Source: Squalus acanthias (Eukaryota). From it: a stretch of 64,000 bases of DNA. Position numbers and translations under genes: made by a program. The stretch lies in assembly GCA_030390025.1 (NCBI GenBank), contig CM059430.1:75702001-75766000 (forward strand), written 5' to 3'. Under the pieces are notes generated by a model, which did no database searches, had not been told where the DNA came from, and was given only the letters and a program-made list of their open reading frames with translations. The first letter of the stretch is position 1. Each line of letters begins with the position of its first letter. Below, in pieces: positions 10,764-46,125 of this stretch.

Positions 10764-10809
10764 ATGTTTGTGTGTCAGTACATATGGGTCTTGGGGATTA
10801 TTTACGAAG
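10764..10809 (+). CDS. Gene A leader exon (MFVCQYIWVLGIIYE)
   Basis: ACAATG start, hydrophobic peptide, 46 nt, phase-1 donor GAAG|GTATTT, 205-nt pyrimidine-rich intron before the V exon. Confidence 0.75.
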
Positions 10810-13800
10810 GTATTTTCAGTAATAATCAATCCTGCTTTCTTTTTCCTTTTGTTTAATTCAATCAATCTTCCAATCTTTCTTTTTTTCTTCCGTGCTTTCT
10901 TTCTGTCTATTTATTAATCTAACTATGTCTATCTATCTATTTAGTTATCTGTCCATGCGGGCCTATGTATATTTTGTTTCTATATTATTACTAACTTTTA
11001 AAAATATTTTACAGTTGCTCCCGCTGCAGTTTCCCAAACCCCTGAAAGCACCAGTGTGATGGCAGGTGCAGACATTACGTTCCATTGCAAGACCAGCTCT
11101 GTCCAGAATAATTCAGATGTGAATGTTTATTGGTGGAGACTTGGCGACAATCACTTTCTACAACCAGGCTCTGACGGCAGAAAGCGATTCGTTCCTTTAA
11201 AAAGCGGAGAGGCTTCATTCCAGATCCTGAGTGTCCAGTTCCCAGACTCCGGATCCTATTACTGTGGAGTGAGATACACAGGAAACCCGATGATAAAAGG
11301 AGCCGGATCGAAGCTTGATGTGCACGGTAAGTGACCTTGGGGAAAGTTGCGGCCGCTGCTATACCAAAATAACAAAACCAGGCGGAGCGGCCATGTTATG
11401 AGGTTTCTTTTAGTGGACCTTTTGCACATTTATGTTTGGATATTTACAGTGCAGATGTAATTGAAGTGCTTTAAGTATATTGAGTTATGTAGATGGTATC
11501 ATAAATTGTTTTGATTATTTAACGAAATTATCCATGACGTTAGTTTATGTCCGATGATTAGGGAACATTATTTAAAATCAGATCTGAGGTCGTATCGCGG
11601 TTATCACCCAGTATGATGTTTTATTTTCCATTCATATATGTAAGATAAGTATCCAGGACACTTTACAGAAGAGGGGTCTGAGGCCAAGAGCGCGGGTTGT
11701 GGTAGCAAACACGAGATGGGTGACTGGCCACAAGGACAGAAAACAAATGAGTTTCTACAAATACTGGTACGGCCACATCTTAATTACTGTGCACAACTAT
11801 ATCACTAAACTACAGTGAGGATACACAAGCATTGGACGCAGTGTAGAAAATGAAAACTAGCTTGAAAAACCGGAGTGGAGCCTGGGCCTGTTTACATTGG
11901 AGCGCACAAGGCGCATTGGAGATTGTATTCTAGTACTCGAGATTATTAAGATAATAGATAGCTGGAGTTTGCCCCGAAGACGGCAAACAAAGGATAGTGG
12001 CTGAAACTTCATAGAGTGAGCGGCCAGAGAGTTGAGATTGAACTACTTTTCGCAGAAAATTGTGAATATGTGAAACCGACTGTCCAGTGGACGCAGATTA
12101 CATGAAAGATGCTGAGGGGAACATTGAATCGATATTTGGCGGAGTGAACGGATGTGATGTTTTAGATTTGGGGAATGGGCAGCTGGACTGCAGAGTATTT
12201 TCCGATCCAGCATTTCAGATGAAATTATTACTGTGTATTCTAAAACGTTTGTGATAATGCCGGCGACTGTCTCTAACTTCATAGAATCATAGAATTTTAA
12301 GCACAGAAACAAACCAATCAGCCCATCGTGCCTGTGCCGGCTCTGTGAAAGAGCTCTCCAATTAGTTCCACTGCCCTGCTATTCCCATATAACCCTGCAA
12401 AGTTTTTCTTTTCAAGTAAATATTCCATTCCCTTTTGAAAGTTACGATTGAATCTGCTTCCACCGCCCTGTCAGACAGCGCATTCCAGATCACAACAAGA
12501 AATGCGAAAATTATGATTGCAAACACAGCAGAAAATAATAAATTTGATTCTCTTGTGCGAGTAGATTCTACAGCAAATGTTGCAGAAATTGAACTGGCTG
12601 AAAATTAAACAAATAAAAGAGAAGGTGGATCAAATCCTGAAACATGGGGAAATTATTATATTAATTATTTAAAAAAAAACTCTTCTCCCTTAATATTTTG
12701 GCCAATAATCTTAAATCTGCGCCTCCTGCTTGCCGACCCTGCTGCCACGAGAAACAGTCTCTCCCTCCCTAGCCTATCAAAACCCCTCATAATTTTGGAC
12801 AACTCAATTAGATTTACTGTTTAACCTTCTCTACTGTACGGACAACAATCCCAGCTTCTCCAGTCTCCCACAACACTAAAGTTCCTTATTCCTGGTATCA
12901 TTCTGGTAAATCTCTGCTACACCCTCTCAAAGGCCTGGACATCCTCCTCAAAGTGTGGCGTCCAGAATTGCACACAATGGGCCAAAATTTGCAGTGATAT
13001 GCCTCCGATCTGCAAAAATCCACGAATTTACCTGGTGGTCTGGAGAATTGCGCCCCTGGGCCTCTCCGGGTAGCTGCGGGCAGAGGCCCATGTATCCCAG
13101 GGGCGCACGTGGTTCGCAAGTGTACGCACCCGCAGGGGCCGCAAATACGGCCATTATTACTGTCAAGCGTGCCCCCATTCGTACTTGTTAAAGTTACAAT
13201 TTAAATCGAGAGTTGTGATCTGTCCTCAGTCCAGGAGAAGCGCTTGAGATTCCTTGGAGAAGGCTGGCTCATAGTTGGGTTCGACACGCATGCAGTATAA
13301 CTCCGGGATAGTACCAAATCTAGTTTTCATAAATGATCAAAGGGTCCCGAGGACCACATTGTATATTTACATGGAGTTTATTCAGGTGCTCATAGATTGT
13401 AGATCCTCCGTCTCTTTTCTCCATGTATATACAGAGCTCTACCTCGGAGAGGGGCATTGTCACTTTCATCTCCCAGTATTCAGGGACATTATTGTTACAG
13501 TTACAACTCAGTATGTACTCAATTTATCGAGTTAAAACCGATAGGAACCCGAGGAATTTAACATGCAGGTCAGTTTATATAATCACTGGTTAGGCCTCAG
13601 CTGGAGTATTGTGTTCCAAATTTACAAAACTGAATGCGAGTTGTTTGAAATAAGTTTTGCCTATTTATTTAAACCTGCCTAATAACAAAACTGAGCAAAA
13701 AGCTGCTGAGCTGAAATATAAATATAATTATTTGCGTGGACTAAGCACAAGCGGCGACACCCTGGATGTCTAGTCGCACTGAATTGTTTCTCCTGTTCCT

Positions 13801-16800
13801 GCAACACGCTTCTGCACCGTCCGCATATTAGTCCAGAAAGTTATGGGAAGAATCTTATTTCGAATTGTTAAATAACTAAAATGCGAATTGGAATCATCGT
13901 ATTTTATTCAGGAAGACGGGACGCCAAACGAGACTTAAATAGCAGAGTCTGGGCAATCAGTTTATTCTTGACCATCTTCCACGGCTTCCCCAGAACCCGT
14001 GATACTTGTCCCCAAAGTGTCCGGAACCAACCCATCTACTCTAACACTTGTGTGTGAAACGGCAGAGTTCTACCCGGAGGCGCTCAGTTTCACTTGGTAT
14101 AAAAATGACACAAACATTGTGACTGGGATCAACACCATTATAAAGCAGAATTCTGAGGGAATGTATGAAGCTTCCAGCAGAATGGAAACGACACAGCCAG
14201 CCCAGAGCGGGGCTGTCTATACCTGTGTGGTGTCTCACCTCACACTGCAGAGTCCAGCCGTGACTGTTTACTTTGATTCCAGTTCTAACGCAGGTAAGAT
14301 GCTGACATTTTTACAAATATTATCAGCCACTGACCACTTTAAATTGGCTTTATTTGCCCTCAGTCCTTTTAAAGATTGTTTACATTTGCGGATTTGTAAA
14401 GCGGATAAAAGAGGCAAACGGCTCCCATCAGAGGCAATTTGCGACACAGTCTTCTTAGACTCAAAGTTCATCATTGTCGTGTGAAGAAAATCCAAAAATT
14501 ACATTTTAATCCAATAACGTAAACAATTGACGTGCCTGATTCAGTTTAAGGGGAAGCAAGAATCAATTAAATTATATTTTACAAATAGAATTATATCAGC
14601 GTGTACACGTTAACAGTCTCACTCCTCATGCCCTGCTATGGAACCACTGAAAATATATTTCGTACAACTAACATATTGTTCAACTGCCTGATTGCAAAAC
14701 ACCGCCTACAATGAAGAGCTGGGAATTGACTATTAATATTATTAGTTTTATTATGATTCTAGAGGTTTATGGACACACATGCCTTTACCTACTGATTGTT
14801 AGATGTACAGGGAGTGCACTGATATTTCTCGCCCTCATCACCGTCCTTGGGAGCAGTTGTCAACTCAGTAACTGTAAAGGTAAGGAGCCACCTATGTAGT
14901 TTCACTGTGATAATTCTGTAATAAAGAGGGAACAAGATGACGGCGGGCAGATGAAGGAGCGTTAAGGGTCGTACAGAAATAAAATTATGCTGATATGTTC
15001 AACCATTGTATTTGGTTCCACGATCTGAAATGCAGTCAACATATCTGATAAACGAACACCGATTTTTGCATTTTTTGATGGTGTTTTGTAGTTTTGAATG
15101 AGTGATTCCCTGTGTTCCCTGAAGGCATTTAAGGAACTTTACCACTAGGTTGTTCAACCAAGGGGGCGGGAGGGGAGATTTGCGATTACATTTTCAGAAC
15201 TTTTCATGAGCTGTGATCCTGAAGGTGTTTTTGGATGAGCTTTCGTTGATTCACTCGCTGATGTCTGGTCAAAGTTTAAGTTTGTATTTCACTAGGTGCC
15301 CACGGAAACGATGAGGGGCCGCGCCATGTGGAAGAACGGGTGCGTTTCTCTCCTACCTTTTCGAAAATGTTTGAACTTAAAAAAAAATGTGATCGTAAAC
15401 TAAGCATATTTCAAATGTACGCTTTACACGATTACTCCTTATATTGTTGGTAAATGTTTGTGTTCATTTCCACGAGGGGCCACCGTAAAAAAAATCAACA
15501 AATCATCATCAGTCCCAATAGCAGGGGAAAACATTCCCAGCCAAGTACAGCACTGGGTGCACACCGGCCGAACGACGCTGTCCGATGATCCCCCCGCCCC
15601 ACGTCTGGTGCAGTAGCGCTACTTTTTTCTGCGCAAATCGCCCGAAACCATCCAAAAAACTGCAAACATTCGGGGGCTTTTCGCCACCCGTTGCCGTCAA
15701 AAAACCGTGAGGACGTCGGCAGCCGCTCTTTCGCCAGCAGGTGGTGGGGCCCGCAGCGCTGCCGGTAAGTTGCATCTCCCTCCAAATTAAAATGACGGAG
15801 CAGTGATGTCAGTCTGCATCCAACGCCGAGTTAACGTTACCACCGCGAACTTGAACAGATGCACTGAGTCCAGTGTTGGGTCCTAAGCTCTGCATGTAAA
15901 CCCAGCCTGCAAGCAGACTCACAGAGTCGCTGTCAGTACCTCTTAAAGGGATACACGCATCTTTCAGGTAAGTTTACATTTAAGCTTCTGGATGGATTTG
16001 TTGATTTTACTGTTGTAGTGGCTTGCTACAATACATGTTAAAATATTGGTTTAGCGTGTACGGAGTTCAGAAGGAAGGATGCATCCCAGACAGCCAATTT
16101 CTGACCGAGATTATCTGCTGGTAGTCCCAGTGACCACAGCCCCAATTCCCGTTTCAACATTAGTCCCACACCTTACCTTCCCTCTGTTAATGACCATCAC
16201 AGCGTCTCCTTGGGCACAATGCTGAAATAAAAGCCACCACAAAGCAAACCTTCCAATCCAACTTTATACAACTAACCATCCAATATGGCATCAACAAATC
16301 AACTCACTACCCTTATGCATTCACTTCGTGACTGCCTTGTGTGTGCCTTTGCTCTTCCTACTGATGTCACGCAGTGCTACTTCAGTGGTTGTAGCATGAC
16401 TGGTGGAAGTGAGGGACACTGCAAATGGCCTTGCTAGTCCGCCTTCAGGAGGTGGTGGCTGGCAGTGTGAAATCTAGTGAAGCTGTTTCTTCCTGTTCTT
16501 CTTCATTCTCCTCTCTCTCATCTTGGCCAACCATTGGCTGGGAAGGCTGCATTGCTTGGGTGTGTGAAATGAGGAATGCAGAAGCGTGGAGTTGTGGTGA
16601 GGGGATTGCGGGAAAGCAAGAGGTGCATGCCAGAAGGAGAGTGACGTATGAATAAAGCAGCATCTTTTATCCTATCAGCCCCACCGCTGGCCAATGGCCC
16701 CAGCCAAGAACGGCCTGCACTGTTTCCTCCAATGGGCTGAGATGAGGCTAGGAATGGGAGATGTGCCTCATGATTTGTACAGATTGTTGGTAGGTGAGTG

Positions 16801-19800
16801 ATGGGGGGGCGGGCGGATTCATGAATTGTGCAGTGTGTGAGGCTAGTGCTGCAGTTGGTAGGAGATGGCTTTTGAAGATGCATTCCCTGACCTTGGCCAG
16901 TGGTCTGTGGTGCTGAAGCTTCTTTGGGCATTTTGGACAGATGGTGGGGGCGACACTGCTGGCAGTGAACACCTCGGTGATGTGCTCCCATTTCTGGAGG
17001 GCCTCCTGGCCCCTGTGGGTAAAGGAACTCCTATGCAATGTTGACACCATGCACAAAGGTGGAGAGCTGCATATGAGACGCTAGGAGCCCCTTTCCTGGC
17101 TGGCTGAGCCACGTGTGTTAATGCTGAAGCACTTTTCCCATTTTTTCAGCTGCGGAAGGGAATTCTGCTTTAAGTGCTGAAGACTCCAATTCGGAATTTC
17201 TTTTTATTGTTCACTTTTTTTAAAAAGGCAGGATGAGCTGCAAACTGCATTTTTTCACTTCATTTTTTTTTGGTTTATAGTTTCTAGGTTCGCTGTGGTG
17301 TAGCGGGGACAGTTGGTAAACAAGGGCCCTATATCATTAATTATAGTATAATTGGTGGGATTGATTTGATATAATTAAAGTTCAATTAATTAAAGGGTAA
17401 ATCATGGCAGCACAGCTCGACGCCGTCCTATGCTCCTCCTGCGCTATGTGGGAAATCGGGGACACTTCCTGTGTCCCTGACGACCATGTGTGCGGGAAGT
17501 GTATCCAGCTGCAGCTACTGGCAGATCGCATTGCGGCGCTGGAGCTGCGAATGGATGCATTCTGGAGCATTCGCGATGCTGAGGACCTCGTGGATAGCAT
17601 GTTTAACCAGTTGGTCACACCGCAGGTAAAGGCTGCACAGGCAGAAAGAGAATGGGTGACCATCAGTCAGAGTAGTAGGCGCAGGCAGGTAGTGCAGGAG
17701 TCCCCTGTGGACATCCCCCTCTCAAACAGATATACCGCTTTGGATACTGTTGAGAGGGATGGCTTATCAGGGGAAGGCAGCAGCAGCCAACTTCCTGGCA
17801 CCAGGGGTGGTTCTGCTGCACAGGACGGGAGGAAAAAGAGGGGTAGAGCTATAGTGATAGGGGATTCTATTGTAAGGGGAATAGATAGACGTTTCTGCGG
17901 CCGCAAACGGGACTCCAGGATGGTGTGTTGCCTCCCTGGTGCAAGGGTCAAGGATGTCTCAGAGCGGCTGCAAAACATTTTGGAAGGGGAGGGTGAACAG
18001 CCAGTTGTCGTGGTGCATATAGGTACCAACGATATAGGTAAAAAACGGGATGAGGTTCTAAAAGCTGCATATAGGGAGTTAGGAGATAAATTAAAAAATA
18101 GGACCTCAAAGGTAGTAATCTCAGGATTGCTACCAGTGCCACGTGCTAGTCAGAGTTGAAATAGAAGGATATTTCAGATGAATACGTGGCTGGAGGAATT
18201 GTGCAAGGGGGAGGGATTCAAATTCCTGGGACATTGGAACCGGTTCTGCGGGAGGTGGGACCAGTACAAATCGGACGGTTTGCACCTGGGCAGGACTGGG
18301 ACCGATGTCCTTGGGGGAGTGCTGGCTACTGCTCTGGGGGAGGGTTTAAACTAAAATGGCAGTGGGTTGGGAACCTGAACAGGGAGACAGAGGAAAGGGA
18401 ACAAGGTAAGAAGCAAAAGGCAGGAAGGAAAAAAACAAAGGTGTCAATCAGAGAAATCAAGGGTTTAAATCAAACGTGGCCACAGTAAAAAAAAATTCTA
18501 AAAGTTGTAAGAGCGTTAAAAAGACAAGCCTGAAGGCTTTGTTCTGAATGCAAGGAGCATTCGTAATAAGGTGGATGAATTAGCTGCGCAAATAGAGGTA
18601 AACAAATATGATATGATTGGGATTACGGAAACATGGCTCCAGGGTGACCAAGGCTGGGAACTCAACATACAGGGGTATTCAATATTCAGGAAAGATAGGC
18701 AAAAAGGAAAAGGAGGTGGGGTAGCATTGCTGGTTAAAGAGGGGATTAACACAATTGTAAGGAAGGATATTAGCTCTGATGATGTGGAATCTGTATGGGT
18801 AGAACTGAGAAATACCAAGCGGCTGACAACGCTAGTGGGAGTGGTGTATAGACCCCTAAACAGTAATACGGAGTTTGGGGATGGCATTAAAAGGGAAATT
18901 AGAGAAGCGTGCAATAAGAGCACAGCAGTTATCATTGGCGACTTTAATCTACATATAGATTGGGCTAACCAAATTAGTAACAATACTGTGGAGGAGGAAT
19001 TCCTGGAGTGTATACGGTATGGTTTCCTGGACCAATATGACGAGGAACCAACTAGAGATCACGCAATCTTAGACTGGGTATTATGTATAGAGAAAGGATT
19101 AATTAGCAATCTTGTTGTGCGAGGCCCCTTGGGTCGGAGCGATCATAATATGATCGAATTCTTCATTAAGATGGAGAGTGAAGTAGTTGACTCAGAGACT
19201 AGGGTCCTGAATTTAAATAAAGGAAACTACGATGGTATGAGGCGTGAGTTCGGTAGGATTGATTGGGGAATGTCACTCAAAGGGTTGGCAGTGGAGAGGC
19301 AATGGCAAGCATTCAAAGATCGCATGAATGAACTACAGAGTTTGTTCATCCCTGTTTGGCATAAAAATAAAACAGAAAAGGTGACACAATCGTGGCTAAC
19401 AAAGGAAATTAGGGATAGCATAAGATCCAAGGAAAGGACATATAAATTGGCCAGAAAAAGCAGAAAACCTGAGGATTGGGAGCAGTATAGGATTCAGCAA
19501 AGAAGGAAAAAGGGATTAATTAAGAGGGGGGAAATAGAGTATGAGAGTAAGCTTGCGTGAACATAAAAACTGACTGTAAAAGCTTTTATAGATATGTGAA
19601 GATAAAAAGATTGGTGAAGTCAAGCGTAGGTTCCTTGCAGTCAGAATCAGGGCAATTTATAATGGGGAACAAAGAAATGGCGGACCAATTAAATACATAT
19701 TTTAGTTCTGTCTTCACAAAGGAGGACACAAATAACCTCCCAGAGATGTCGGGGATCATAGGGTCTAATGAGAAGGAGGAACTGAAAGCAATCAGTATTT

Positions 19801-22800
19801 GCAGAGAAATAGTGTTAGGGAAATTGATGGGATTGAAGGACGATAAATCCCCAGGGCCTGATAATCTACTTCCAGGGTAAATAAGGAAGTGGCCCTAGAA
19901 ATAGTAGATGCATTGCTGATCATCTTACTACACTCTACAGAATCTGGAACAGTACCCATGGATTGGAGGGTAGCTAATGTTACCCCACTATTCAAAAAAG
20001 TTGGTAGAGAGAAAATGGGGAATTATAGACCAGTAAGCCTGACATCGGTAGTGGGGAAAATGCTAGAGTCCATTATAAAAGATGTAATAGCAGAGCACTT
20101 GGAAAACAGTGTCAGGATCAGACAAAGTCAACATGGATTTACAAAAGGCAAATCGTGCTTGACTAATCTATTAGAATTTTTTGAGGATGTAACTGGTAAA
20201 ATGGATAAGGGAGAACCAGTGATGTGGTGTATTTGGATTTTCCGAAGGCTTTCGATAAGGTCCCGCATAAGAGATTAGCGTGTAAAGTTGAGGCACATGG
20301 GATTGGGGGCAAGGTATTGACTTGGATAGAGAAGCTGGTTGGCAGACAGAAAACAAAGAGTTGGAATAAATGGGCCTTTTTCCGATTGGCAGGCGGTGAC
20401 TAGTGGGGTACCGCAGGGATCGGTCCTAGGACCCCAGCTATTCACAATATATATTAATGATCTGGACGATGGAATTGGATGTAATGGCACAAAAATTAGG
20501 CCTAATACGGGAGAGTATGCACTGTGTACTCACCCGTATTAGGTCCCGAAGTGCCGGTTTCCTGCATGCACTGCGCATGCGCGGGCAAACCGGCACTTCC
20601 GGTATGGCGAATGGGGCGGTTCCTAGGTGAACTGCGTGCGCAATACAGGCTGGTTTTTTTCAGGTTTCAACGCAAGGGTAAGTATTGAATCTTCTGCACA
20701 TGTGAAAAGGAGGCGTAAGACCCCTTTTGAACAAGGTAAGTAGTTAATTAAGTATAATTTTTAATTTTTTTCAACAGGTTTACTTTTTTAGAGACTTTAA
20801 ACAAAGGTAAGTTTATTTTTATAATTAAAAAAAAAAGTTTGTCTAATTTAAATTTTTGTTTAAAGTGGTTAATTTATTTAACTATAGCTATTTTATTAAT
20901 GTAATGGTTTTTTTTAAATTTATTTGTGGTTTAGCTGTTCTTTTGGGGTCTCTTTCAATTCACACATTTGACATGTCTCCTGTCAAATCTATGATTGAAA
21001 GATAGTCTACTGCCATTGGCTCTCCATGGCCCACGTGATCCCAGAGGTCGCATCGCACTAACTGCGCCCCTGGGACACGCACACACTGCACGCCAGTACT
21101 AGGGAGAGGCCCAGGACCCGAAGTTCCTGTGGGCCCAAAACACAACGGCCGGCGCGGAGTGTGATATCGCGCACGATCCTTACCCCCGCGGCAAGCCTCC
21201 GAGTCAAATTTCTGGGCCAATATCTCCAGGTTTGCAGATGACACAAAGCTGGGTTAGGAGTGTGTGGCGTGAGGAGGATGCCGAGAAACTCCAGTATGAT
21301 TTGGACAGGTTGGGGTATTGGGCAGAAGCATGGCAGATGCAATCTAATGTGGATAAATGCGAGGTTATCCACTTTGGTGTCAAAAACAGGAAGGCAGATT
21401 ATTATCTGAATGGCAATAGAAGGGAGAAGGGGGAGTGCACCGAGACCTGGGTGTCCATGTGCACCAATTGCTGAAGGTAAGCATGCAGGTGCAGCAGGCA
21501 GTTAAGAAGGCAAATGGTATGTTGGCCTTCGTAGCGAAGGAGTTCGAGTACAGGAACAAGTATGTCTTGCTGCAGTTGTACAGGGCCTTGGTGAGACTAC
21601 ATCTTGAGTATTGTGTGCAGTTTTGATCGCCTTATCTGAGGAAGGATGTTCTTGTCATGGAGGCAGTGCAGCGAAGATTCACCAGGCTGATACCCGGGAT
21701 GGCAGGAATGATATATGAGGAGAGATTGGGTCGATTGGGCTTATACTCACTGGAGTTTAGAAGAATGAGAGGGGATCTCCTTGAAACTTATAAAATTCTA
21801 ACAGGACTAGGCAGACTAGATGCGGGAAGGATGTTCCCGATGTCCGGTGAGTCCAGAACCAGGAGTCACAGTCTAAGGATAAGGGGTAAGCCATTTTGGA
21901 CTGAGATGAGGAGGAATTTCTTCACCCAGAGAGTGGTGAACCTGTGGAATTTATCACCACAGAAGGCAGTAGAGGCCAATTCATTAAATATATTCAAGAA
22001 GGTGTTCGATATATTTCTTAAAACTAAAGGGATCAAGGGATATGTAGAGAAGGCAGGGACAGGGTACTGAATTTGGATGATCAGCCATGATCTCATTGAA
22101 TGGCGGAGCAGACTCGAGGGGCTAAATGGCCTACAACTACTCCTATCTTCTATGTTTCTATGTTTAATTTTCATTAGTTTATTTAATACATTGCCTTTTA
22201 AATTTCCCACAGTTCCGAGGGAACTCAGTAGCCTCACTTCCAGATGCTGTTGGCAACTGGAACGCTGCACTACCGCCACCAGGAGAGCGTTAGCCGGTAA
22301 AAACCTGTTGCCCGAAGCGTGAATTTTCCCCTGGTAGCGTTTCGTCCATTTTCAGCGGCCATTAACCCGAGTTGCCGGTCACACCGCCAACTCTCGTGGC
22401 GGCCAGGAATTTTTCCCCAAGTAATATTAAGCACACATTACGTTCGGCGCATATCTAGATTCAACCAATTTAACACTAGTTTAAAAAATTCCACACTAGA
22501 ATCTGCCCCCACCCATAAAACTGGCCATGCCCCTCCCCCCAGATCATTGCGAATTTCCTCTACTTGCGCCCATTTTATGGCCTTCGAGGAGGCTCTTAAA
22601 ATTAAGCTCTCTTTTAGGCACAGGGAGCATTTTAAAAGCTTTCAAAAATATATATATTTTAATTTACTACGAAACTGACTATTGTATACCAATGTAACTA
22701 GTAAATGGTTCTGTAAAGTTTTTAAAGTAATTTTCAGTTAATTAAAATCGGGTTAATTACATTGGGTGCGTTAGACACTCGGAATAAAAATGCTTACATT

Positions 22801-23769
22801 TTCTGGTAAACCCATTGTCAACTGTATTAATAAAGCTGCACCAGGTTATCAGTCTTAAATAAATAAATATTAATCCAATTTAAAAAAATAATTCGAAACC
22901 GCTGCCTGTTTGCACTGATACATGACAGATTTTAAGTTCGGTGATTTGCAAATTATTTTGAGCGGATACTTGAGGAAACAACCCTTCTCAAAACTAGCGC
23001 ATTTATTAGTGCATTTTGCTCCGGATCATCGATAGCGACCAAAGTGGAACCTCTAGAATGAAGATCCCTCTACACTAGCCCATCAAATATCTACGGGCTC
23101 GTGCAGTGTGGTTAGATACAGAGTAAATCTCCCTCTACACTGCCCCATCAACCACTCCTAGGTCAGAAACAGCACAGGTTAGATACAGAGAAAAGCTCCC
23201 TCTACACTGTCCCATCAAACACTCCCAGGGCAAGTACAGCACAGGATAGATACAGAGTAAAGCTCGCTCTACACTGTCCCATCAAACACTCCTAGGGCAA
23301 GTATAGCACAGGAAGGATACAGAGTAAAGCTCCCTCTACACTGTCCCATCAAACACTCCCAGGGCAGAAACAGCACGGGTTGGATACAGAGAACAGCTCC
23401 CTCTACACTGTCCCATCAAACACTCCCAGGGCAGGAACAGCACGGGTTAGATACAGAGTATAGCACAATTCAGTTGCTCACTGAGTGTAGAGGAGATTAT
23501 ACTGCTTTTCAGTATCTAGGAATTATTTGAATTCGAAGGATTGTAATGGTTTTTTATTACGCGTCTGAACAAGCAGAAAATTGTGCAATTTCAATAATGA
23601 TACACTGATAGTGAGATATTCATTATTCAACTAACATATTCGTGAATCTTCAATTTAGCTACAGCCATCGCACTCTGTTTCATCCAGCACTCTGCTGACT
23701 CATTAAGGTCATGAGCTAACCAGAAATCGCTTCGATTTTACAGACCACGGAAGGGACGGTAGAAAATAG
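10764..23769 (+). CDS. Gene A: spliced non-rearranging VJ-C1-TM IgSF receptor (NKp30/antigen-receptor-like; pipelines may call it SIRP-, B7-H6- or Ig light chain-like). join(10764..10809,11015..11326,13994..14293,14763..14879,23744..23769), ~266 aa
   Basis: All introns are GT-AG and phase 1. Exon lengths 46+312+300+117+26=801 nt give an uninterrupted frame. The last exon is the least certain. Confidence 0.8.
11015..11326 (+). CDS. Gene A V-set exon with joined J-like strand
   Basis: ttttacag| acceptor; VSQTPE..ITFHC..VYWWR..DSGSYYC..GAGSKLDVH; donor CACG|GTAAGT. Confidence 0.92.
12279..12980 (-). mobile_element. CR1-type 3' fragment in gene A intron 2, followed by a MITE end (~12980-13160)
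   Basis: CATAGAATCATAGAA tail; LINE 3' similarity. Confidence 0.7.
13994..14293 (+). CDS. Gene A C1-set exon
   Basis: LTLVCETAEFYPEALSFTWYK..YEASS..YTCVVSHLTL (C1 signature); acceptor cttccccag|, donor GCAG|GTAAGA. Confidence 0.92.
14763..14879 (+). CDS. Gene A transmembrane exon with intramembrane Arg
   Basis: attctag| EVYGHTCLYLLIVRCTGSALIFLALITVLGSSCQLSNCK; donor AAAG|GTAAGG. Confidence 0.85.
15524..17200. mobile_element. Non-autonomous PIF/Harbinger element; probably resumes at ~22170-22331 after the CR1 insertion
   Basis: GGGGAAAACATT start and AATTTTCCCC end; Myb-like remnant on minus strand (EEEQEETASLDFT); similar to 42885-44560. Confidence 0.65.
17200..22165 (+). mobile_element. 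Near full-length CR1-type LINE: ORF1 (Zn finger, coiled coil, SGNH esterase) 17404-~18350; ORF2 (APE-RT) ~18520-22070; inactivated
   Basis: CSSC..C..C, VIGDSIVRG, HIGTND; GITETW, IIGDFN, SDH; GVPQGSVLGP, FADDT; TTCTATGTTTCTATGT tail; stops and frameshifts. Confidence 0.95.
20486..21218. mobile_element. Harbinger-type MITE inserted in the CR1 RT domain, TSD AAT
   Basis: TIR GGCACAAAAATT / AATTTCTGGGCC; AAT on both flanks; removing it restores GCNISRFADDT. Confidence 0.9.
23064..23461. repeat. Minisatellite, ~6 copies of a 67-bp unit
   Basis: CCCTCTACAC recurs at ~23066, 23131, 23198, 23265, 23332, 23399. Confidence 0.92.
23744..23769 (+). CDS. Gene A putative terminal cytoplasmic exon (DHGRDGRK*)
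   Basis: Branch-like GCTAAC and ttttacag| acceptor in unique sequence after the intronic repeats; candidate poly(A) signal at 24340. Confidence 0.45.
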
Positions 23770-24339
23770 ACTGCTGCAGATGGCATAAGTTGTAATCAAA
23801 GACGGAAACCTAAAGATAACGAAAAGTCTAAGCAGAGGAACAGGCCAGCCAATAAGGAAAGAATCTTTCCTCATCTAACAGAACAAAGAGCGAAATGATG
23901 CTAATGGCGGATATAACATTTCACTGGAACGTGCTGACCTTATCAATTAGGGTTAAATATATAAAAAATACAGGACAACCCGATAGTTTTGTTAATCTTA
24001 AATTAAAACAAAATATAGTAGAAAACCACAATACGATCTGACATCACTGCTCCGATGAGGCGTTCCATCCGACCTTCCTCTTTCAGATGCTGATCTTTAT
24101 GCTGTTTATTTCTCCTTAATTGTAATGTTTCCGATGTGTTTACATCAACATTATGACGTGCTTTCATGACTCCCTGTCCCGGGAGACAACTATTAAAATG
24201 TAAAATGTAATCATAGCAAACGGTACCGAATTATTTTAGCGATCTCCATTTAATGTCAAAGTTGGTGTCTTATTCATTGTTAGCAATATTTAATTTAGTC
24301 TGTCATGAGTTAATTCATTAATATATGTATCGCTCCCAA

Positions 24340-24578: not shown

Positions 24579-26835
24579 GGCCTGAAATTTGCGGTCAGCG
24601 GTGAAAGAACAGCGCTCACCATTCATTACAGTTACAGTTGCGCACAGACGTTTCGTGGGCTTTTGATCGGCAATTTATGTTTGCTAGAGATCATTTTCAG
24701 CGCCGCACCCTCTACAGGGGATCTGTCGCATGTGTGAACAGGACGATTAACACCGAGTCTCTTCAACCAATCAGATTGAAGACTCACTGCAGGACGCTCC
24801 TAGCTCTGCTCAGCTGCATGCAGACGCTGAGCCTCGGGGGCCATCCAGAAAGAGAGCGATCCTGGAGGTGCAGCAAAAAGTGCAGGAGGCTTCGACAGGT
24901 TTTGCGACTGCGATGTCTGCAAATGTCCAGAGAATGGAGGAGTCCATCTCCAACATGAGCAGCACTGTGACGCAGTTGATGGTGACTGTATGCTCTTCAC
25001 TGGAAAAGATGGTCACCTGCAGGGAGCAGCTAATGTGTCACTCAGATGAGTACATAGGATCTATGGAGAATAGATGGCTATCTATGGAGAATAGATGGCA
25101 GACGCTCATAGACCTCCTCTCCCGGAGGGTTGTAAATGTAGGCCTGCGTCCCCATGGCCACAGTGATGTGCAGCAATGTGCCCTGCACTTCCTTGCTAGC
25201 AGGAAAGTGCTGGTGGCCCATGAGAGGGATGACGGTGAGAGGGGACATGGAAGTGGGGTCGCCTCTCAAAGCGCTCACACTTCTCCCCGTTTGCCTTCCC
25301 TCAGTCAGAGCCCCAAATGCCTCTTGGAATCACGATGGCCGAATCTGCCCCTGCACAGTTGCAGAAGGAGCAGACATTGGCTGGGCCATCACAGGCTCCA
25401 AGACCCAGAGGACGTCTGCCGAAAGGGTCTACGCAGTGAGGATGCTGCATGTACCTCTGCTGAAGACCCTGGGGTAGACCCTCGCAGATGCAAGCATAAG
25501 AGATAGGTGAAACACAAGTAGATGCACAAGGGCCAGCACTTGGGTGTTTTATGACACATCTTGTGGAAATGTGGCTTTCATTATATCTCTCCACAGATAC
25601 TGTACTTGGCCTCCTCAAGGTGACATGGGCTACGTCTTCAGTAGGAAGCCCTTGTCTCCAAGCAGGCAACCAGAATGTATGTTTGGAGGTGCGAAGAGCT
25701 GAGGGAGGGAGGACTGGTGCAGGACGAACGAATCACGGCAGCTGCCATGGAATTTGGCGAACACATGCATTATGATCCTCGTTTGGTTGCAGACCAGCTG
25801 CATATTGAGGGAGTGGAAGCCCTTGTGGTTGATAAAGACTCCTGTGTGGTGGTGGGGTCTCCTGATGGCCACATGTGTGAAGTCGATAACGCCCTGCACC
25901 CGTGGGAAGCCAGCCAGAGCGACAAAGGCGAACGCCTGCTCCAGTAACACTGGCTTTATCAGTGGCAACGTTGGCAGACTTGTCAAACAGAGCATCGGTG
26001 ACCTGTGCACTGCATCTGTGGGCGGCTGACTGCAAGATGCCACAAATGTCTGCTGCAGATCCCTGGAAGAAGCCTGAATTGAAGATGTTGAGGGTGCTGG
26101 TGACTTTGGCAGTCACTGGTAAGGCATGCCCACCCGCTCTTCTGGGCTGCAGGTCACTCTGCAAAAGTCTGTGATGAATGGCGCGATAGCCTGAGCCTCC
26201 TCTGTCACTGCTGCTCAGTCATGTTGAGGAAGCTCATTCTCTGACTGTAACCCCTGTGTTGGGGATTTTGCCACCGGCGTGGTGCAGCCCTGCGCTGATG
26301 CCCTCTGTCCTGTGGAGCATCAGGTGGTTGAGGAGTAGGTTTTGGTGATGTTGTTGTCAGTACAGCTGGTGTGCCAGGTGCTGCTGATGTTGGGGCTCAT
26401 TGTGGTCCGATTCTGAGACCAAGTTGAGACACTATGAATGGCACAATGCTGATGTAATAAATGGCAGGTCAAGTAGAGAAGCAATCTGCCAATTGTGTGA
26501 TAGGTTCTGCCAATGAGGAGACTGTGGATCTCGACTTTGCAGAAAACACTTGCAACCTGCAGAAAGCTAAATCTCTGATGACAATGCACTTAGCAACAGC
26601 ATCTGCCAGAGGAAAGTAACCAGGTGGGAGTATTTATTGTGCATTCCATGCTGTGCACTAATGAGTTCCTTCAATGGCCATTGAACTTCCGGCTTAGGTT
26701 CACAGACGTGGCTCCCGAGCTGCTTGGTTCATCTGGTCATCCAGTGAAATTGGAAAGGTAGGGTTAAAAAGACGCTTAAGGGTCTGCCATGTACCTAATA
26801 ATTATGTAAATTAGCTCGGCCACCTCTGCCGTTCA
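24579..26835. mobile_element. Decayed PIF/Harbinger with convergent Myb-like gene remnant (+) and HARBI1-like transposase (-)
   Basis: Minus strand: [47 protein letters not shown]; TIR-like GGCCTGAAATT. Confidence 0.85.
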
Positions 26836-35745: not shown

Positions 35746-35751
35746 GAATAC

Positions 35752-36342: not shown

Positions 36343-36344
36343 TA

Positions 36345-37650: not shown

Positions 37651-37715
37651 TCAACGCTCTTACGAACCATCAGCCAGTTCACGGTCTGTCGCTCCGAGTG
37701 ATCAATTGGTTCAGA

Positions 37716-37770
37716 ATGTTGGCGACTGCTGTACTTCAATGTCTCTCTGTTCTGGTACTCATGTTCACAG
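37716..37770 (+). CDS. Gene B leader exon (MLATAVLQCLSVLVLMFT), intact
   Basis: Hydrophobic peptide, 55 nt, phase-1 donor ACAG|GTACCT, 169-nt intron. Confidence 0.8.
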
Positions 37771-37939: not shown

Positions 37940-38260
37940 GTTCCTGCGAAACCTCGGTCAAAGTGACTCATCTCCCTGAAAGCGCGAACATAAAGAGGGG
38001 TACAAGCGTTTCCTTTCATTGCACGCTTCCCGTCTTTCAAGACGGACCACGGGTGAAGGTATACTGGTGGAAACAGGGTGATAATAAATGTCTAAGCACA
38101 GGACCTGATGACAGAAAAGTAACTGGCTCCAAAACTAAATTCAGCGGCTTCCTTCAGATCATCAATGTGAGTGTCCAGGAGTCGGGAGTATATTACTGCA
38201 CTGTCGCCCTTCCAAACAGAATAGTTGGAAACGGAACAGGATCCAATTTAGCTGTCTGGG
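37940..38260 (+). CDS. Gene B V-set exon with joined J-like strand, intact
   Basis: cccgatag| ..VSFHC..VYWWK..ESGVYYCTVALPNRIVGNGTGSNLAVW; donor TGGG|GTAAGT. Confidence 0.92.
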
Positions 38261-39560: not shown

Positions 39561-40324
39561 TCTGTCTTGGTTTGTGAGGGCTGACATTTACTCTTGGAAT
39601 ACAGATTGGCGGGTTTATAATATAATAATCCATATATTGAGAGTCTTGAAATCCGGGTGTAAATAACAGTTAGTTATTGTGCTCTGTCTGCGTCCTGAAC
39701 AACCAACCCCATATTTTCATAAACTTCCTAGTCTCCAGTAAGTAAGATGTTGACCAGAACTTGAGTTTTAAAGTCTCTCCCGCTTGGGAAAATCGTACTT
39801 TGTCGCCAGTTGTTATACTGCAGGCCTTAACCAGGTTTTAAATCGGCGAAAGTGTAAGACCCCCGGTTAAATGTACAGAATATAAGTTCAGCAAACTTTC
39901 CCAATTGCACAAGTCATATTATTTGCTTCATCCAAGGAGCCATATAGAGGGAGAAGCAGACTGTGTTCCTTACCCTTATGGAAAGGGCAATATTTTAATG
40001 TTGTGAATTTAAATCAGATACATTGAAGAACAATACCTCCTTGTGCTAATTGTTAAAGTTGTAAAGATGTGAAAAACCTGAAAAATTAGCACTGAGTTAT
40101 GATAGAATAAAGTAGAAAATTATATAGAGCAAATGTAATAGAACATTACAAAATTTATCCACAAATAAAGTGGGAAACATGAACATCAGGTTTAGATTTA
40201 AAAGATGCCGTTATCTGTGTCCCTAATGATAGCGCACAGAGAAAAATGTCCTGTCACAAATGCAACGATGGGTTGATAACTTTGAATGAGGTCCAAGTAA
40301 CGGCCTTTACCTCCACTTTTCTAG

Positions 40325-40632
40325 TTCCGCCAACTCCACTGAAAATTGTCTCTCTGGAACCTGAAAAGGAGTCACTTGCGTCATGACTCTACTGTGCACA
40401 TCATCTCACTTTCAGCCGTAGAATATGAGCTTCACCTGGTATAAGGATGGCACCAAAATTACAACAAGGATAAATAACATTAACCAACCCAACACCGATG
40501 GACTATATGAAGCTTCCAGCTGGTTGGAAGAGACGCAGGCTGTCCAGACCGGGACCATTTATACCTGCCTGGTGTCTCACAGTACCCCCAAAATTTCAGC
40601 CACGGCCACTCACATTGTCAGGAACCCTACAG
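40325..40632 (+). pseudogene. Gene B C1-set exon, frameshifted, with internal stop
   Basis: VPPTPLKIV.. then shifted frame MTLLCTSSHFQP*NMSFTWYK..YEASS..YTCLVSH; 308 nt long; TAG at 40419-40421. Confidence 0.88.
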
Positions 40633-40764
40633 GTAAGATTGTAGATCACAGTTATCCTGCAGACAGAATCGTTGCTGCGACTCTCCATGTTGGGCAAACT
40701 GTCCTTTCTCACTAGTTGTTCTACACCGGCTCTTTCACCAGGTTTTACATCCATAAAAGTCTAG

Positions 40765-41537
40765 GGGGTAAAAATTGAGTCGCGCCCCATTTGGGGCGCT
40801 AACCTCGCCGGGGCGCGACTTTTAGCGCCCCGAAAAAATTAGCGGCCCCGCGCCGGAACTTCAGTGGTTGCGCCCCAAGAGGGAAGCGGGGCGCCACTGG
40901 AAGCACCCCGCATCCCTCTTGGGGCGCTGCGAGGGAATATCCTGGCGCTAGGTGCCGCAGCGCCACGTGCTGCGGCACGTCGCGCCGCGGTATTGCAGGC
41001 CTTCCTCCCCTTCTTAAAGGGGAGGGACCCTGCGCAGCGCGAACCGGGGCCCAGCCGGGCCCCCAGGGATCGGGAGTGCCGGCAAAAGAGCCCGGCACTC
41101 AAGAGAAGTGCCGGGCTCTTGGAGCGCAGCCGGCACTTCACGGTGGGGGGGCTTCACGGGGGCCGGGGACAGCAACGGGGGCAGGTGCTGGCAGGCGGCC
41201 AGCAACAAAAATGGCCGCCTGCCACCTCCCCTTTAAATATCGCCGCCCCGGCCGCACGTACGCCTCCCTGAACCCGTCGGACATAGCGTCTGGCGGTAAA
41301 TCAGGGGGCGCGACTGAAGATCGCGGCTGGAGCGCGAGCGGGGTGCTGCGCACGGCGATGGCGTCATCGCCGGCGGCGCAGCGCCACAGGGCGCTACCGG
41401 CTGGCGCCGCCGCTAACCTCCCGCTGAATTTTTCGGGAGGCGTGGGCGGCGCTGCGCCCGGGCGTTAGCTGCTTTACGCCCCATTAGCGCCCTCTTAAGG
41501 CGCTAACGGGAGGCGCAAGCAGCTGAATTTTTCCCCC
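40765..41537. mobile_element. GC/CpG-rich Harbinger-type MITE with TSD TAG in gene B intron 3
   Basis: TIR GGGGTAAAAATT / AATTTTTCCCCC; TAG on both flanks. Confidence 0.85.
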
Positions 41538-42074
41538 TAGGACTCCTGGTTGCCTTTGTTCACTTTTAATCAGGTTTAATTCTGTTCAAAGAGCTCGACG
41601 ATTGCTGCTCGTGGTCTCCTGCCTTATTGGGCGGCTTCTCCTGCAGTCCTGGTGTCACGGCTCAGATGTGGCACTGACTTTTGGGGCAAGAGCGGGCGGT
41701 AACTCCGGCCGACAGGTTGTTGCAGAATCGCTGCCTCCTGCGTCCCACAAGCTGTGCTCACAATCTGCTGCAAACTGCATTTGTGTCAACAGCTATTAGA
41801 CACAGTACAAAGTTAAAAATTAGCCGTTGTCACTTTCAGTCGCAATTTTATTATCAACAAGAAACAAGGTTAAAATTAGTTTTGAGAAAATATGTTTTTC
41901 ATAACACTAGAATTTCGTGAAAAAAAATACAAAATGGCAAAAAATGTCTGTGTTTTTTCAGACCACGTGTTTGCTGAGAATAATTTTCAGACAGGAATCC
42001 ATTACTTATAGTTGTGATTGTGTGCCAATTTGGAAATATCCTTAATATTTATATAATTTACTTTAACATTTTAG

Positions 42075-42188
42075 ATCGTGCCAACAGCTCCCGTGTCTTA
42101 CTGATTTCCAGATGTGCATTGGTGGGACTGGTATTTCTAATGGTGGCTCTCAATATTGCGAAGCGATGTCAATTAAAGAAAAGTAAAG
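42075..42188 (+). pseudogene. Gene B transmembrane exon with Arg
   Basis: ttttag| DRANSSRVLLISRCALVGLVFLMVALNIAKRCQLKKSK, aligns with the gene A TM exon. Confidence 0.82.
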
Positions 42189-42884
42189 CTAATAAATATT
42201 TGCTTTTATTTTTAAAAGGTTCTGGAAAATAGTTTAAGAGAGATTACCAGCAGATTGCATGGAATTAGATAGAAATTGCAACACGAAACGGGCCTATCGG
42301 CCTAAACAGTCCTAATCCTCCAGAAATATCTAATCCCATGTGGCCACCCGCTTCATTTATCTCCATTTCCTTCAACCACCCAGCCAACCTATTCTTAAAT
42401 ATTGGCTTGGTCTCTGATTCATCTATTAACTTCGGTAGTGCATTCCACATCTTCACAACCCTCTGTGCAAAAAGGTTTCTGCTCCTCTCTTACATTCAAT
42501 CCTATATCTGCATAGGCTCGTTCTAGTCCCTTCAATCACTGGAAACAGTCTGGGGTAATTTTGGCGATGGTGTAAAATTGGCGATATTGGATCAGCCCGA
42601 TTTTGCTTCATTTGAAAGCAAAATCGGGCGAGGTGTAAAATGGGCAGCCGATCTCATCTGGTCCTTTTTAAATTATCGCCGAATTTACGTCTATCCCACC
42701 TATCCCACCATTCATAATTGTAAACATATCTAATGACCCCATAATCTTCTCTGGTCTGACGAAACAGTAGCAATTTTCAAAAGTTGGTGCAGAGGGGAGT
42801 ATATTTGGGTAACTGGACAGTTCAAGGGGCTGGTATTCTGTCAGAGGAACAGAACAGCGATGTACTTTTAGTACATTCAACTCA

Positions 42885-44560
42885 TGGGCTAAAATTTCGG
42901 GGGCTTAACATCACCCATTACCCGTAAAAGGTTGCGTAAAGTGGGCGGCTGCCGCTCTTTCGCCAGCTGGTGGCGAGTCCCGTGGCGTCCTCCATTTTCC
43001 CAGGCACGACGGTGCTGCCGCTATGATTGTACTCCCTGCAAATTAAAATTGGGGAGAGGTGACATCGCCGACTTAATGTCAGCATGGCGAATTTGGACTT
43101 TAGTGTTTAGTTCAGCGCTGGATCCTAAGCTTCGAGGTAAACCTAGTTTGCAGCAGATTGACAGTGGCGCTTTCAGCACCTCTTAAAGGGACCACTACAT
43201 CTTTCAGGTAAGTTTGCATTTAAGCTTTAAGAAGTTGATTCTTTGAATTTATTGAAGTAATGGTTTACTGCAATACATGTTAAAAGTATTTTTTTAACTG
43301 TGTCGGGAGTGCTGCTGGACGATTGCAGGACCTCTGAGATGAAAGAAAATGCTGAAAATGCTCTGCAGGTCAGGCAACATCCGCGGAGAGAGTAACAGAG
43401 TTCACGTCTCAGGTCAAGATGATGCCTGATCTGCTAAGTATTTCCAGCATTTTATGGTGTCATTTCTGATCTACAGCATCCGCTCGCCGAGGGAAGAGGA
43501 AGACGCAGGAGAGGAAGACGTAGGAGAGGAAGAAACAGCAGAGGAAGAAATCGAAGAGAAGGAAGCCGACAAGGAGGAAGCCAAAGAGAAGGAAGCAGAC
43601 GGATGGATGAATCCGAAACAGCTCCTTTCTGGCCAGGATATCCAGGATGGAATCATCTGCCTGTGGTACCAGTGACCACAACTCCAATTACCCCATCAAC
43701 ATCAGTCCCACACGTTACCTTCCATCTGTTGTTGACCATCACAGCGTCCACTTGGCCACGATGCTGAAATAAAAGCCACCACGAAGGAAACTTTCCAATC
43801 GACCTATATATACATCTATCCATTCAATGTGACATCAAGACATCGACACATCAACCTTATGTATTCCCTTAGTGACTGTCTTGTGTGTGCCTTTGCCTAT
43901 CCTACTGATGTCACGCAGTGCTACCCTAGTGGCTGCAGCATGGCTGGTGGAAGGCTGCTGAATTTCAATGAGGAACACTGCAGATGGCCTTGCTGGTCGC
44001 CCTTGAGGAGCTGGTGGCTGGGTGTGTCAAATCAAGTGACGGTGTTCCTTTTTCTTCTTCTGCTTCACTCTCCTCCCCCTCTTCTTGGCCAACCATTGGC
44101 TGGGCAAGCTGCATTTCTTTGTTGTGTGAAATGAAGAAGGCACAAGGGTAGATTTGTGGTGCTTGGAGGGCGGCTTTGCAAGAGGTGCAAGCCAGAAGAA
44201 GGATAACATATGAGGATGCCAGCACTTTGTATCCTTTCTGCCCCGCCATTGGCCAGGGCTCAGCCATGCCCCTGTTAAGAGTGGTCTGCACTGTCTCCTC
44301 TAAGGGGTGAAGTTTGGGTAGGAATGGGAGATGTGCCTCGTGATTGCTACAGATTGTTAGTAGGTGAGTGATTGGTGGGGGGGGGGGAGTTTTGCATTGA
44401 GCAGTGTGTGATGCTAGTGATGCAGTTGGTAGGAGACGGCTTTTGAAGATGCATTCACTGACCTTAACCAGTGGTCTGATGTTAGGAGCTTCTTTCGGCA
44501 CTGGTACCAGGTGGTGGGGGCGACAAAGCTGGCAGTGACGGCCTCGGTGATCTGGCTTCG
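42885..44560. mobile_element. Non-autonomous PIF/Harbinger element, same family as 15524-17200
   Basis: Colinear with 15750-16980; acidic transposase tail at 43490-43610. Confidence 0.7.
43335..43455. mobile_element. Degenerate fold-back Penelope pLTR fragment
   Basis: AAAATGCTG..AGGTCAGGCA..TGCCTGA..TTTCCAGCATTTT. Confidence 0.55.
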
Positions 44561-45332
44561 GATATAGAATTGTCGCAGGTAAACTGGTAACAAGCACACG
44601 TCTGAATCCAAACAATTCGTGAACATGTGATAGTGAACATAATTTAAAAAAATTGCATTTTGTCCTAATTAGGGGCACAATCGCGGATTAAATTATTTAT
44701 TTTAAAATATTGAACTCCATTCATTACCAGGAGCCGAGAAAAATGCGGAGACACCAGTCCCTCGTGAACAGCCGGTCTGTTTATTTCATTGATCATAACT
44801 TATGTCACATGTAAAGATGTAACGTTATTTTCAGAATCAGCTGAGAGAGTTTCGATCAATTTCATGCAAGAACATGCCCTGCCTTATTCCAAAGCTCCAA
44901 TGCGTTTGCCTCCAATACCGTGTCTGGAAAATTCTCCCAAATATGTCTGAGTCTTTCAAGGAAGTATTTTCGTTAAAGCTGTTCTCTATTTATTTCCCCT
45001 TCACATCGCCTGCTCCTCGCCAAACACTGAAGGAATAATCCGCTCTACAATATCTAAATCATTGAAAATGTTCCATATGTTACGAGATTCTGAACCACAT
45101 TATACACAGTTTGGGAAGATTCAGCGTCTCGATACTTCCTCCTATTTCACCCTATTTACATTTAGGATCAGCCTTGTCTTTTTCTTCTTACATTCCTGAA
45201 ATCATATTTATTTTTTTAGTTTTAGTGGAAAAGTAAAAGTAATATTCGAAGTGTGATCCACAAGTTAATATAAAAGCTTTCACACGACCTCCTGTATTCG
45301 AGCTGGTGGTTATATATCCCAGAATTCTATTA

Positions 45333-45549
45333 CAACAGCAAAATACTGCGGATGCTGGAAATCTGAACTAAAAACAGAAAATGCTGGAAACACTCAGCAG
45401 GTCAGGCAGCATCTGTGAGAGAGAAACAGAGTTAACGTTTCAGGTCGATGACCCTTCGATGACTCATCGACCTAAAACGTTAACAGACTTTCTCTCTCTA
45501 CAGATGCTGCCTGATCATCTGAGTATTTCCAGCATTTTCTGTCTTTATT
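45333..45549. mobile_element. Fold-back Penelope pLTR insertion
   Basis: Same pLTR as 26845-26960, then its reverse complement; flanks CCAGAATTCT(A/G)TTA. Confidence 0.8.
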
Positions 45550-46036
45550 CCAGAATTCTGTTAGTTGTTTAAGGGCCTGGAAATTGCAAGTGATCTGACT
45601 ATGGTGAGATCCAGACCCTTTCTCATCGTTCTGTGCTGATTTACTTCCATGTATTGCATAATTGGTAAACCAATGTTTGTACTATATAATAAACTTCACT
45701 TTTACTAGTATTAATCTTCTTAAACCATCTCATCGCTCGCGCTTTCTTCTGCCACAATCGCGAGTTGTAAACCTGTTTAACCTTGATTGTACTGCTCAGT
45801 GAGGAATAGGCCCGTTTTTATCCCTAACTTTCACTGTGATTGAACAGTAACGGATGGCTAATGCGATCGGGTTTCACGAATGGTTAAATCCCGTGTCACA
45901 GGAGCTTTTTTTTTGTTTGTTAATTTAAATGGCCCGAAATCAGGTCCCGCCGACCGGCGATTTCCCTGTCCGCGCTCACCCGGGAGTCCGCTCAATTGAA
46001 GCAACAATAGAAATAAATAACTATTTTGTATCTCAG

Positions 46037-46125
46037 TTGCTGCAGAGAGACGCGGATGCAAAGCCGCCTTCCGATGCAACAGCATTGACCAGTTCCAAAG
46101 AAAACCCTCAAGGGATAAATATTAA
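46037..46125 (+). pseudogene. Gene B putative terminal exon (xAAERRGCKAAFRCNSIDQFQRKPSRDKY*)
   Basis: tttgtatctcag| acceptor; only weak similarity (QRKP) to the gene A tail region. Confidence 0.3.

Follow-up and report, generated by a model that had tools for sequence, protein, structure and literature searches.

A locus of Squalus acanthias raises the question of whether genes that carry an antigen-receptor-like variable (V) domain, a J-like strand, a C1-set domain and a transmembrane (TM) segment, without rearrangement, are relics of an antigen-receptor precursor, ligands or innate receptors. To our knowledge, C1-set domains are nearly confined to antigen-recognition molecules, and for this reason non-rearranging VJ-C1 genes are raw material for ideas on the origin of immunoglobulins (Ig) and T-cell receptors (TCR). 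We analysed a stretch of 64,000 nucleotides (assembly GCA_030390025.1, contig CM059430.1, positions 75,702,001–75,766,000), referred to here as the window and numbered from its first letter. We consider it probable that the window holds two tandem members of a germline-encoded Ig superfamily (IgSF) paired-receptor family of cartilaginous fish, of which gene 1 is intact and gene 2 has a disabled C1 exon.

Gene 1 is an intact gene of six exons on the plus strand (10764–23788), arranged as a split leader, a V exon with a J-like last strand, a C1-set exon, a TM exon and two short tail exons. Its coding sequence of 864 nt comprises 287 codons and a stop. AG/GT splice sites were identified at all exons, each exon can be read through in the frame expected for it, and introns 1 to 4 are in phase 1, so that the leader/VJ/C1/TM organisation with phase-1 introns proposed in the initial annotation of this DNA is upheld for this gene. 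Its exons are the following.

10764–10809, plus strand: leader exon (split leader, phase-1 donor); ATG at 10764, GT donor after 10809.
11015–11326, plus strand: VJ exon, V-set ending in the J-like strand GAGSKLDV; 312 nt, AG/GT, open frame.
13994–14293, plus strand: C1-set exon; 300 nt, AG/GT.
14763–14879, plus strand: connecting-peptide/TM exon with LLIVRC; aligns with the TM exon of the relatives P0003, P0004, P0001 and P0170.
15296–15339, plus strand: putative cytoplasmic exon 1; 44 nt, AG/GT, frame fits, weak likeness to the P0003 tail.
23744–23788, plus strand: putative last coding exon with TAA; AG acceptor, likeness to the P0003 C-terminus.

The leader matches the start of the Heptranchias protein P0003 at 14 of 15 residues. 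The VJ exon gives a V-set match in Pfam (8e-11) and is 73% identical to the P0003 V domain, and the C1 exon gives a C1-set match (1.2e-12) and is 78% identical to the C1 domain of P0001. The motifs GAGSKLDV, FYP and YTCVVSH are all present. The tail exons were located via their likeness to the tail of P0003, which we regard as an orthologue; the last exon reads TTEGTVENRLLQMA-stop and the P0003 C-terminus RTMKETVENRLL, with 8 of 12 residues identical (tblastn E 0.45). Because these two exons were added, gene 1 ends at 23788; the initial annotation had carried the locus on to 46125, where nothing coding was found. The resulting tail has about 30 residues and lacks tyrosine.

Gene 1 orthologues of 257–305 aa were identified in Heptranchias, Heterodontus, Scyliorhinus, Mustelus and Pristis, and are 59–70% identical to one another over their full length. 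Relative to them, the J-strand NGT sequon of gene 1 is replaced by KGA (11290–11326), the C1 acceptor AG by GG (13985–13994) and a TM glycine by arginine (14800–14805). The GG stands where the ancestral-type acceptor, which yields the ASPEP linker of the orthologues, would lie 9 nt upstream of the C1 exon. The substitute is the next AG, 9 nt on and preceded by a pyrimidine run; with it, the frame is maintained and the linker loses three residues.

Gene 2 starts 27 kb downstream of gene 1, in tandem on the plus strand. Its exons are the following.

37716–37770, plus strand: leader exon; ATG, GT donor, 47% identical to the start of catshark P0063.
37940–38260, plus strand: VJ exon, intact, with the J-like strand GTGSNLAV; 321 nt, AG/GT, open frame, Pfam V-set 2.2e-9.
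40325–40632, plus strand: C1 exon, disabled; 308 nt, frameshift near 40381–40385, in-frame TAG at 40419–40421.
42075–42182, plus strand: TM exon with Arg-Cys (LLISRC); 108 nt, AG/GT, open frame.

The VJ exon is 63% identical to the V domain of P0063, and the TM exon aligns with the TM segments of stingray P0070 (LLISRC) and of P0135. The C1 exon is a different matter. Its length of 308 nt is not a multiple of three, its entry frame reads VPPTPLKIVSLEPEKESLAS-stop, and the B strand goes on in another frame as MTLLCTSSHFQP-TAG-NMSFTWY. Alignment with orthologues follows frame 1 to 40380 and frame 3 from 40383 and crosses a stop. FQP replaces FYP and is followed directly by the TAG codon; of the C1 motifs quoted for both genes, FYP and YTCxVSH, only YTCLVSH is left here. 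The distal part of the exon still matches C1-set in Pfam (4.5e-7). As assembled, this exon is unable to encode a C1 domain, and the claim of two VJ-C1-TM genes stands for gene 1 and fails for gene 2.

Both flanking exons of the gene 2 C1 exon are in phase 1, and therefore skipping it would leave an in-frame leader-V-TM product. Gene 2 would be a pseudogene or, at best, the source of such a V-only product. A predicted NCBI isoform pair of Heterodontus francisci offers a parallel, in that P0113 equals P0130 minus the C1 exon, with identical V and TM/tail parts; judging from this pair, the family may make V-only forms on a regular basis. A tblastn search of 42183–48300 with 88 family tails gave no convincing tail exon for gene 2.

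In both genes the V domain and the J-like strand (GAGSKLDV and GTGSNLAV) share one exon, as first described, and the two V domains are 37% identical (36/98), close to the 35% or so estimated earlier by eye. The layout of rearranging Ig and TCR genes, with a recombination signal sequence (RSS) beside V and with separate J or D segments, was not found in these genes. A scan of the whole window for RSS (heptamer with CAC fixed and at most one mismatch, nonamer with at most two, spacers of 12 or 23 ± 1) returned four weak matches, none of them adjoining either V exon, which bears out the absence of RSS noted at the outset. Two of the four, at 16198 and 43740, fall within a repeat.

How far the two genes extend into a family was addressed by sequence searches. 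When 16 relatives were run against the window with tblastn, exactly two V and two C1 exons were found, all on the plus strand. A search with the gene 1 C1 reading frame returned ten proteins, all from cartilaginous fish, among them full-length V-C1-TM proteins of 259–286 aa from Heptranchias, Heterodontus and Pristis. HMMER with the gene 1 V exon against 1.84 billion representatives found 316 proteins at E ≤ 0.001. Names were looked up for 30 of the best 150 of these, and all 30 belong to sharks, rays or elephant shark. Within each species, the named relatives lie on one common chromosome-sized record. A profile of 40 members (A1) returned 27 proteins, 26 of them named cartilaginous-fish proteins and the last an unnamed match of 36 bits; this search was word-limited and gives little information on distant kin. 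The ESM Atlas provided generic V-C1 neighbours only. The genes belong to a large germline-encoded family that, on these searches, seems confined to cartilaginous fish (sharks, rays and chimaeras).

The initial annotation had supposed a poorly characterised, non-rearranging multigene VJ-C1-TM family, and this is borne out: the named relatives are all pipeline predictions under inconsistent names. Automatic names include SIRP alpha-like, SIRP beta-like, Ig lambda-like, NCR3 ligand 1-like (NCR3LG1-like), tapasin-related, CD276 homologue, MHC class II beta-like (MHC, major histocompatibility complex) and uncharacterised. One protein with a three-stretch match, P0027, was considered as a possible SIRP and dropped, as it looks like a polymeric-Ig-receptor type. 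Full-text searches found no published description of the family, which priority papers on B7H6/NKp30, NCR3, PRARP and UrIg may cover under another name. In the white shark, the relative P0014 was located on a record of 193.5 Mb, and a shark MHC paper places the MHC of that species on chromosome 19.

Trees were built for V domains (74 rows) and C1 domains (62 rows). Proteins of more than 520 aa, the cluster co-members P0160–P0168 and P0171–P0185, V matches with fewer than 85 aligned residues or less than 55 bits, and C1 matches with fewer than 70 aligned residues were left out. Gene 1 falls into the same eight-row clade in both trees (SH-aLRT 96 and 95), together with proteins of Heptranchias, Heterodontus, Scyliorhinus, Mustelus and Pristis. 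Gene 2 groups with catshark, stingray and skate proteins, also in both (96 and 96), and the V and C1 trees thus agree on placing both genes. The V tree divides the family into halves of 38 and 36 rows (support 97), with the clade of gene 1 in one and that of gene 2 in the other. By this placement, the tandem pair is an old duplication that predates the shark-ray split and no recent copy; gene 1 and gene 2 represent two old lineages, both of which have shark as well as ray orthologues.

The case for paired receptors comes from the TM segments and tails. A TM segment was predicted in 50 of 68 family proteins scanned. Tails of at least 50 aa with one to four motifs resembling immunoreceptor tyrosine-based inhibitory motifs (ITIMs) occur in 23 of the 50. 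The combination of an arginine set within the outer portion of the TM segment and a tail of at most 41 aa was found in five of the 50 by a strict rule and in about 12 by eye. One member combines an embedded TM arginine with a long ITIM-bearing tail, and the remainder show neither type. A membrane-edge cysteine (LISGC or LISRC) is present in about two-thirds of the TM members, and many members also have one or two cysteines immediately inside the membrane. Both window genes carry an arginine within the most hydrophobic 19 residues, in LLIVRC of gene 1 and LLISRC of gene 2. The position of the gene 1 arginine is occupied by glycine in the orthologues of five species and by lysine in that of Mustelus (P0170). 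A subgroup (P0014, P0017, P0100, P0109, P0127 and P0192) has short tails and a TM segment with an outer arginine and an inner Asp/Glu-His, or Asp-Tyr in P0192; two charges in one TM segment are unusual.

From these features, a typical member consists of a split leader, a VJ-type V exon, a single C1 domain, a TM segment that bears a conserved cysteine at the membrane edge, and a tail that varies between members. Members with long ITIM-like tails would be inhibitory, and short-tailed members with a basic residue in the outer part of the TM segment would activate by coupling to an adaptor whose TM segment contains an acidic residue. Gene 1, with its TM arginine and a tail without tyrosine, would be an adaptor-coupled or otherwise non-autonomous receptor. 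Its lineage is conserved in sharks and in a sawfish, and in Squalus acanthias an arginine stands in place of the TM glycine of this lineage. The V loops are well kept among the gene 1 orthologues: 36 of 103 columns are invariant in seven sequences, and most of the first and third loops fall among them. This conservation points to a conserved, probably host-encoded ligand rather than a fast-changing one. Gene 2 shares the TM design in LLISRC and would be a pseudogene or, if its C1 exon is skipped, give only a V-TM product.

The relation of the family to known molecules was analysed by Protein Data Bank (PDB) sequence and fold rankings. Among the best 60 of 3714 PDB matches of the gene 1 V exon, Ig light-chain V domains come first and NKp30 is absent. 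Neither NKp30 nor B7-H6 occurs among all 49 PDB sequences that match the gene 2 V exon at E ≤ 0.001. For the gene 1 C1 exon, shark UrIg2 has the best summed score (7.9e-19), and Ig constant domains, SIRP gamma and alpha, and MHC class II beta rank after it. With a single domain, UrIg2 reaches 27.3 bits at best, no improvement on an Ig constant domain (26.3 bits). With a family profile, the best V-C1 units were Ig lambda (76.2 bits), Ig kappa (75.5), the first two domains of SIRP alpha (70.4) and UrIg2 (62.3). B7-H6 does not appear among the top 60 PDB sequences retrieved with the V exon, with the C1 exon or with the family profile, and NKp30 is not among the best matches listed for any of the three. 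The NKp30-like character initially given to the V domain is not supported, since Ig light-chain, TCR and SIRP V domains score better.

At the level of fold, the AlphaFold model of the orthologue P0003 (predicted local distance difference test score 87.5) was used. Foldseek lists light chains first by E-value, with poor superposition as a whole (TM-score 0.30–0.35). As a whole, the modelled V-C1 unit superposes best on SIRP alpha (TM-score 0.56, root mean square deviation (rmsd) 4.2 Å). VIA-align against 48,161 representative chains ranked B7-H6 first (4zso_E, Z 16.2, rmsd 4.7, 192 aligned).

This last result bears on the first alternative, namely that the genes are shark homologues of B7H6 (NCR3LG1), acting as ligands on target cells for receptors of the NKp30 family. 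B7-H6 itself is a V-C1-TM protein, NCBI applies the name 'natural cytotoxicity triggering receptor 3 ligand 1-like' to several members, including the gene 1 orthologues P0003 and P0002, and the short tails of the gene 1 orthologues lack a signalling motif. The first rank in the fold search, however, is tied within one Z unit with PD-L2, Rst, Neph1 and butyrophilins, B7-H6 is missing from the sequence matches above, and the coexistence of ITIM-bearing and TM-arginine forms is typical of receptors. We regard this alternative as unlikely.

Turning back to the paired-receptor reading, several observations weigh against it. That the family is restricted to cartilaginous fish is based on names for 30 of 150 listed representatives and on word-limited searches. 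The arginine lies only five to six residues into the hydrophobic stretch and could sit at the membrane edge. The gene 1 orthologues lack ITIMs and, apart from the lysine in Mustelus P0170, lack a basic TM residue, and going by these sequences the ancestral role of the lineage may not be signalling. Compared with all six orthologues, gene 1 is changed at three otherwise fixed places, and these departures could equally mean relaxed constraint. Nor was any run on record as RNA found to hold the 4.3-kb gene 1 stretch. Two contigs of run X2 that resemble its exons differ from the window at 7 of 168 and 6 of 140 letters, with no splice joint reported, and may come from a paralogue or another individual.

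These contigs were identified when three contig sets with the same species label, presumed to be RNA by guess only, were compared with the 4.3-kb stretch, the unique parts of which are otherwise bare in all three. One contig covers 11013–11180, leaves the stretch at the V acceptor and continues with 34 letters incompatible with the intron. The other covers 14155–14294, leaves at the C1 donor and continues for 22 letters past it. Both are about 96% like the window, on exons only. They fit spliced RNA of a close copy or allele and are no proof of gene 1 expression. Separately, the repeats in gene 1 introns at 12284–12571, 12716–13147 and 13580–13723 have a contig depth of tens of thousands in all three runs, which likely reflects abundant repeat-derived sequence.

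The same data bear on the view that neither gene is functional in Squalus acanthias, which would make gene 2 simply a pseudogene and gene 1 a recent duplicate in decay whose frame is still open. Gene 2 does carry two lesions, a sequon invariant in the orthologues and the ancestral C1 acceptor are missing from gene 1, and the X2 contigs are only about 96% like the window. Against this, gene 1 retains 287 open codons in six exons, all with AG/GT sites, and every Ig hallmark residue, and its substitute acceptor is in frame behind a pyrimidine tract. We judge a loss of function in both genes to be distinctly unlikely.

A more far-reaching idea is that the family is a surviving pre-RAG VJ-C1-TM lineage ancestral to SIRPs and to the antigen-receptor chains, which would form disulphide-linked pairs coupled through the TM arginine to an adaptor of the CD3 or Fc receptor gamma type, with the two lineages of the window as remnants of the two chains; we give this little credence. 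That the tandem genes are themselves the two chains of a TCR-like disulphide-linked heterodimer, a non-rearranging precursor with V domains paired like those of light and heavy chains, is very improbable: the VJ-C1-TM topology, the membrane-edge cysteine in about two-thirds of TM members, the TM arginine as in TCR chains, the best sequence matches to Ig light chains and the vicinity of two old lineages would suit it, but the gene 2 C1 exon is dead, many members have ITIM tails of their own, and the modelled V-C1 unit is predicted to be extended like SIRP alpha (TM-score 0.56) and not bent like a light chain (0.30–0.35).

Besides the two genes assigned to the paired-receptor family, the window contains transposons only and is rich in remains of long interspersed nuclear elements (LINEs) and of Harbinger-type elements. 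Two LINE copies were identified.

17404–22070, plus strand: LINE in the last intron of gene 1, not part of its product; about 4.7 kb, with GDSL-esterase-like, endonuclease and reverse-transcriptase domains in its open reading frames (ORFs).
48368–51933, plus strand: second LINE copy, with an esterase-like ORF1, endonuclease and reverse transcriptase.

A Harbinger/PIF-type element at 55843–58098 contains a transposase remnant (DDE_Tnp_4, 8.1e-16) beside a partner ORF of 310 aa on the other strand, and a decayed copy in the opposite orientation lies between the two receptor genes at 24868–26164. Downstream of the TM exon of each gene, two pairs of repeats (16110–16981 with 43652–44551, and 15867–16066 with 43109–43310) are 78–79% alike. 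Since they are far more alike than the coding exons, they probably represent a transposon family. The only RSS-like strings near the genes sit in this downstream repeat.

If the paired-receptor reading is correct, paired recognition of the SIRP type by antigen-receptor-like chains would have been elaborate already in the earliest jawed vertebrates. The family would also provide concrete genes for tests of ligands, adaptors and chain pairing, and the analysis identifies one family that stands under at least five unrelated names in current shark annotations.

Among known systems, NKp30 has a non-rearranging VJ-type V domain, lacks a C1 domain and, in the mammalian protein, carries a TM arginine. 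The V-TM product of gene 2, if made, would match this topology. In NKp30, however, V sits directly on the stalk and TM segment, whereas gene 1 has a C1 exon and gene 2 a broken one. Shark NCR3 is reportedly linked to the MHC, a finding attributed to Kinlein in 2021. B7-H6 shares with the family a V and C1 ectodomain with a TM segment, is the top though tied structural match and is the source of some of the automatic names, but no special likeness in sequence emerged from the PDB matches listed, and the family has signalling variants of the receptor type. PRARP, reportedly described by Fu et al. in 2019 in J Immunol, is said to be a pair of non-rearranging VJ genes of bony vertebrates with V-C1, TM and ITIM. 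By this description, the VJ-C1-TM architecture with ITIM would recur in 23 relatives, and the differences are that the family here is a large multigene one with activating-type forms and that the gene 1 tail lacks tyrosine. Germline-joined Ig light chains differ in being secreted without a TM segment, whereas both window genes have TM exons and 50 of 68 relatives a TM segment.

UrIg and UrIg2 resemble the family in their non-rearranging single-exon VJ, split leader and following C1-type domains (PMC12227049). The same source gives UrIg2 as a single gene with 9–11 C domains in the antigen-receptor complex and UrIg as MHC-linked (PMC12227049), which contrasts with one C1 exon and many genes here. 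SIRP C1-set domains are presented as a link to antigen receptors in PMC2785349, and the SIRP family is listed under Tetrapoda in PMC13262535, whereas the family described here was found only in cartilaginous fish. Shared with SIRP are an N-terminal V domain with a J-like G strand, in which NGTGSxLxV of the family aligns with SGAGTELSV of SIRP alpha, a C1-set domain followed by a TM segment, and, at the level of the family, ITIM-tailed forms next to short-tailed forms with a basic TM residue. SIRP differs in having two C1 domains, and three Ig domains in all, compared with one C1 exon in each window gene and one C1 domain in 40 aligned relatives. By the sequence and fold rankings, the family forms a distinct V-C1 type that stands at about the same distance from light chains as from SIRP.

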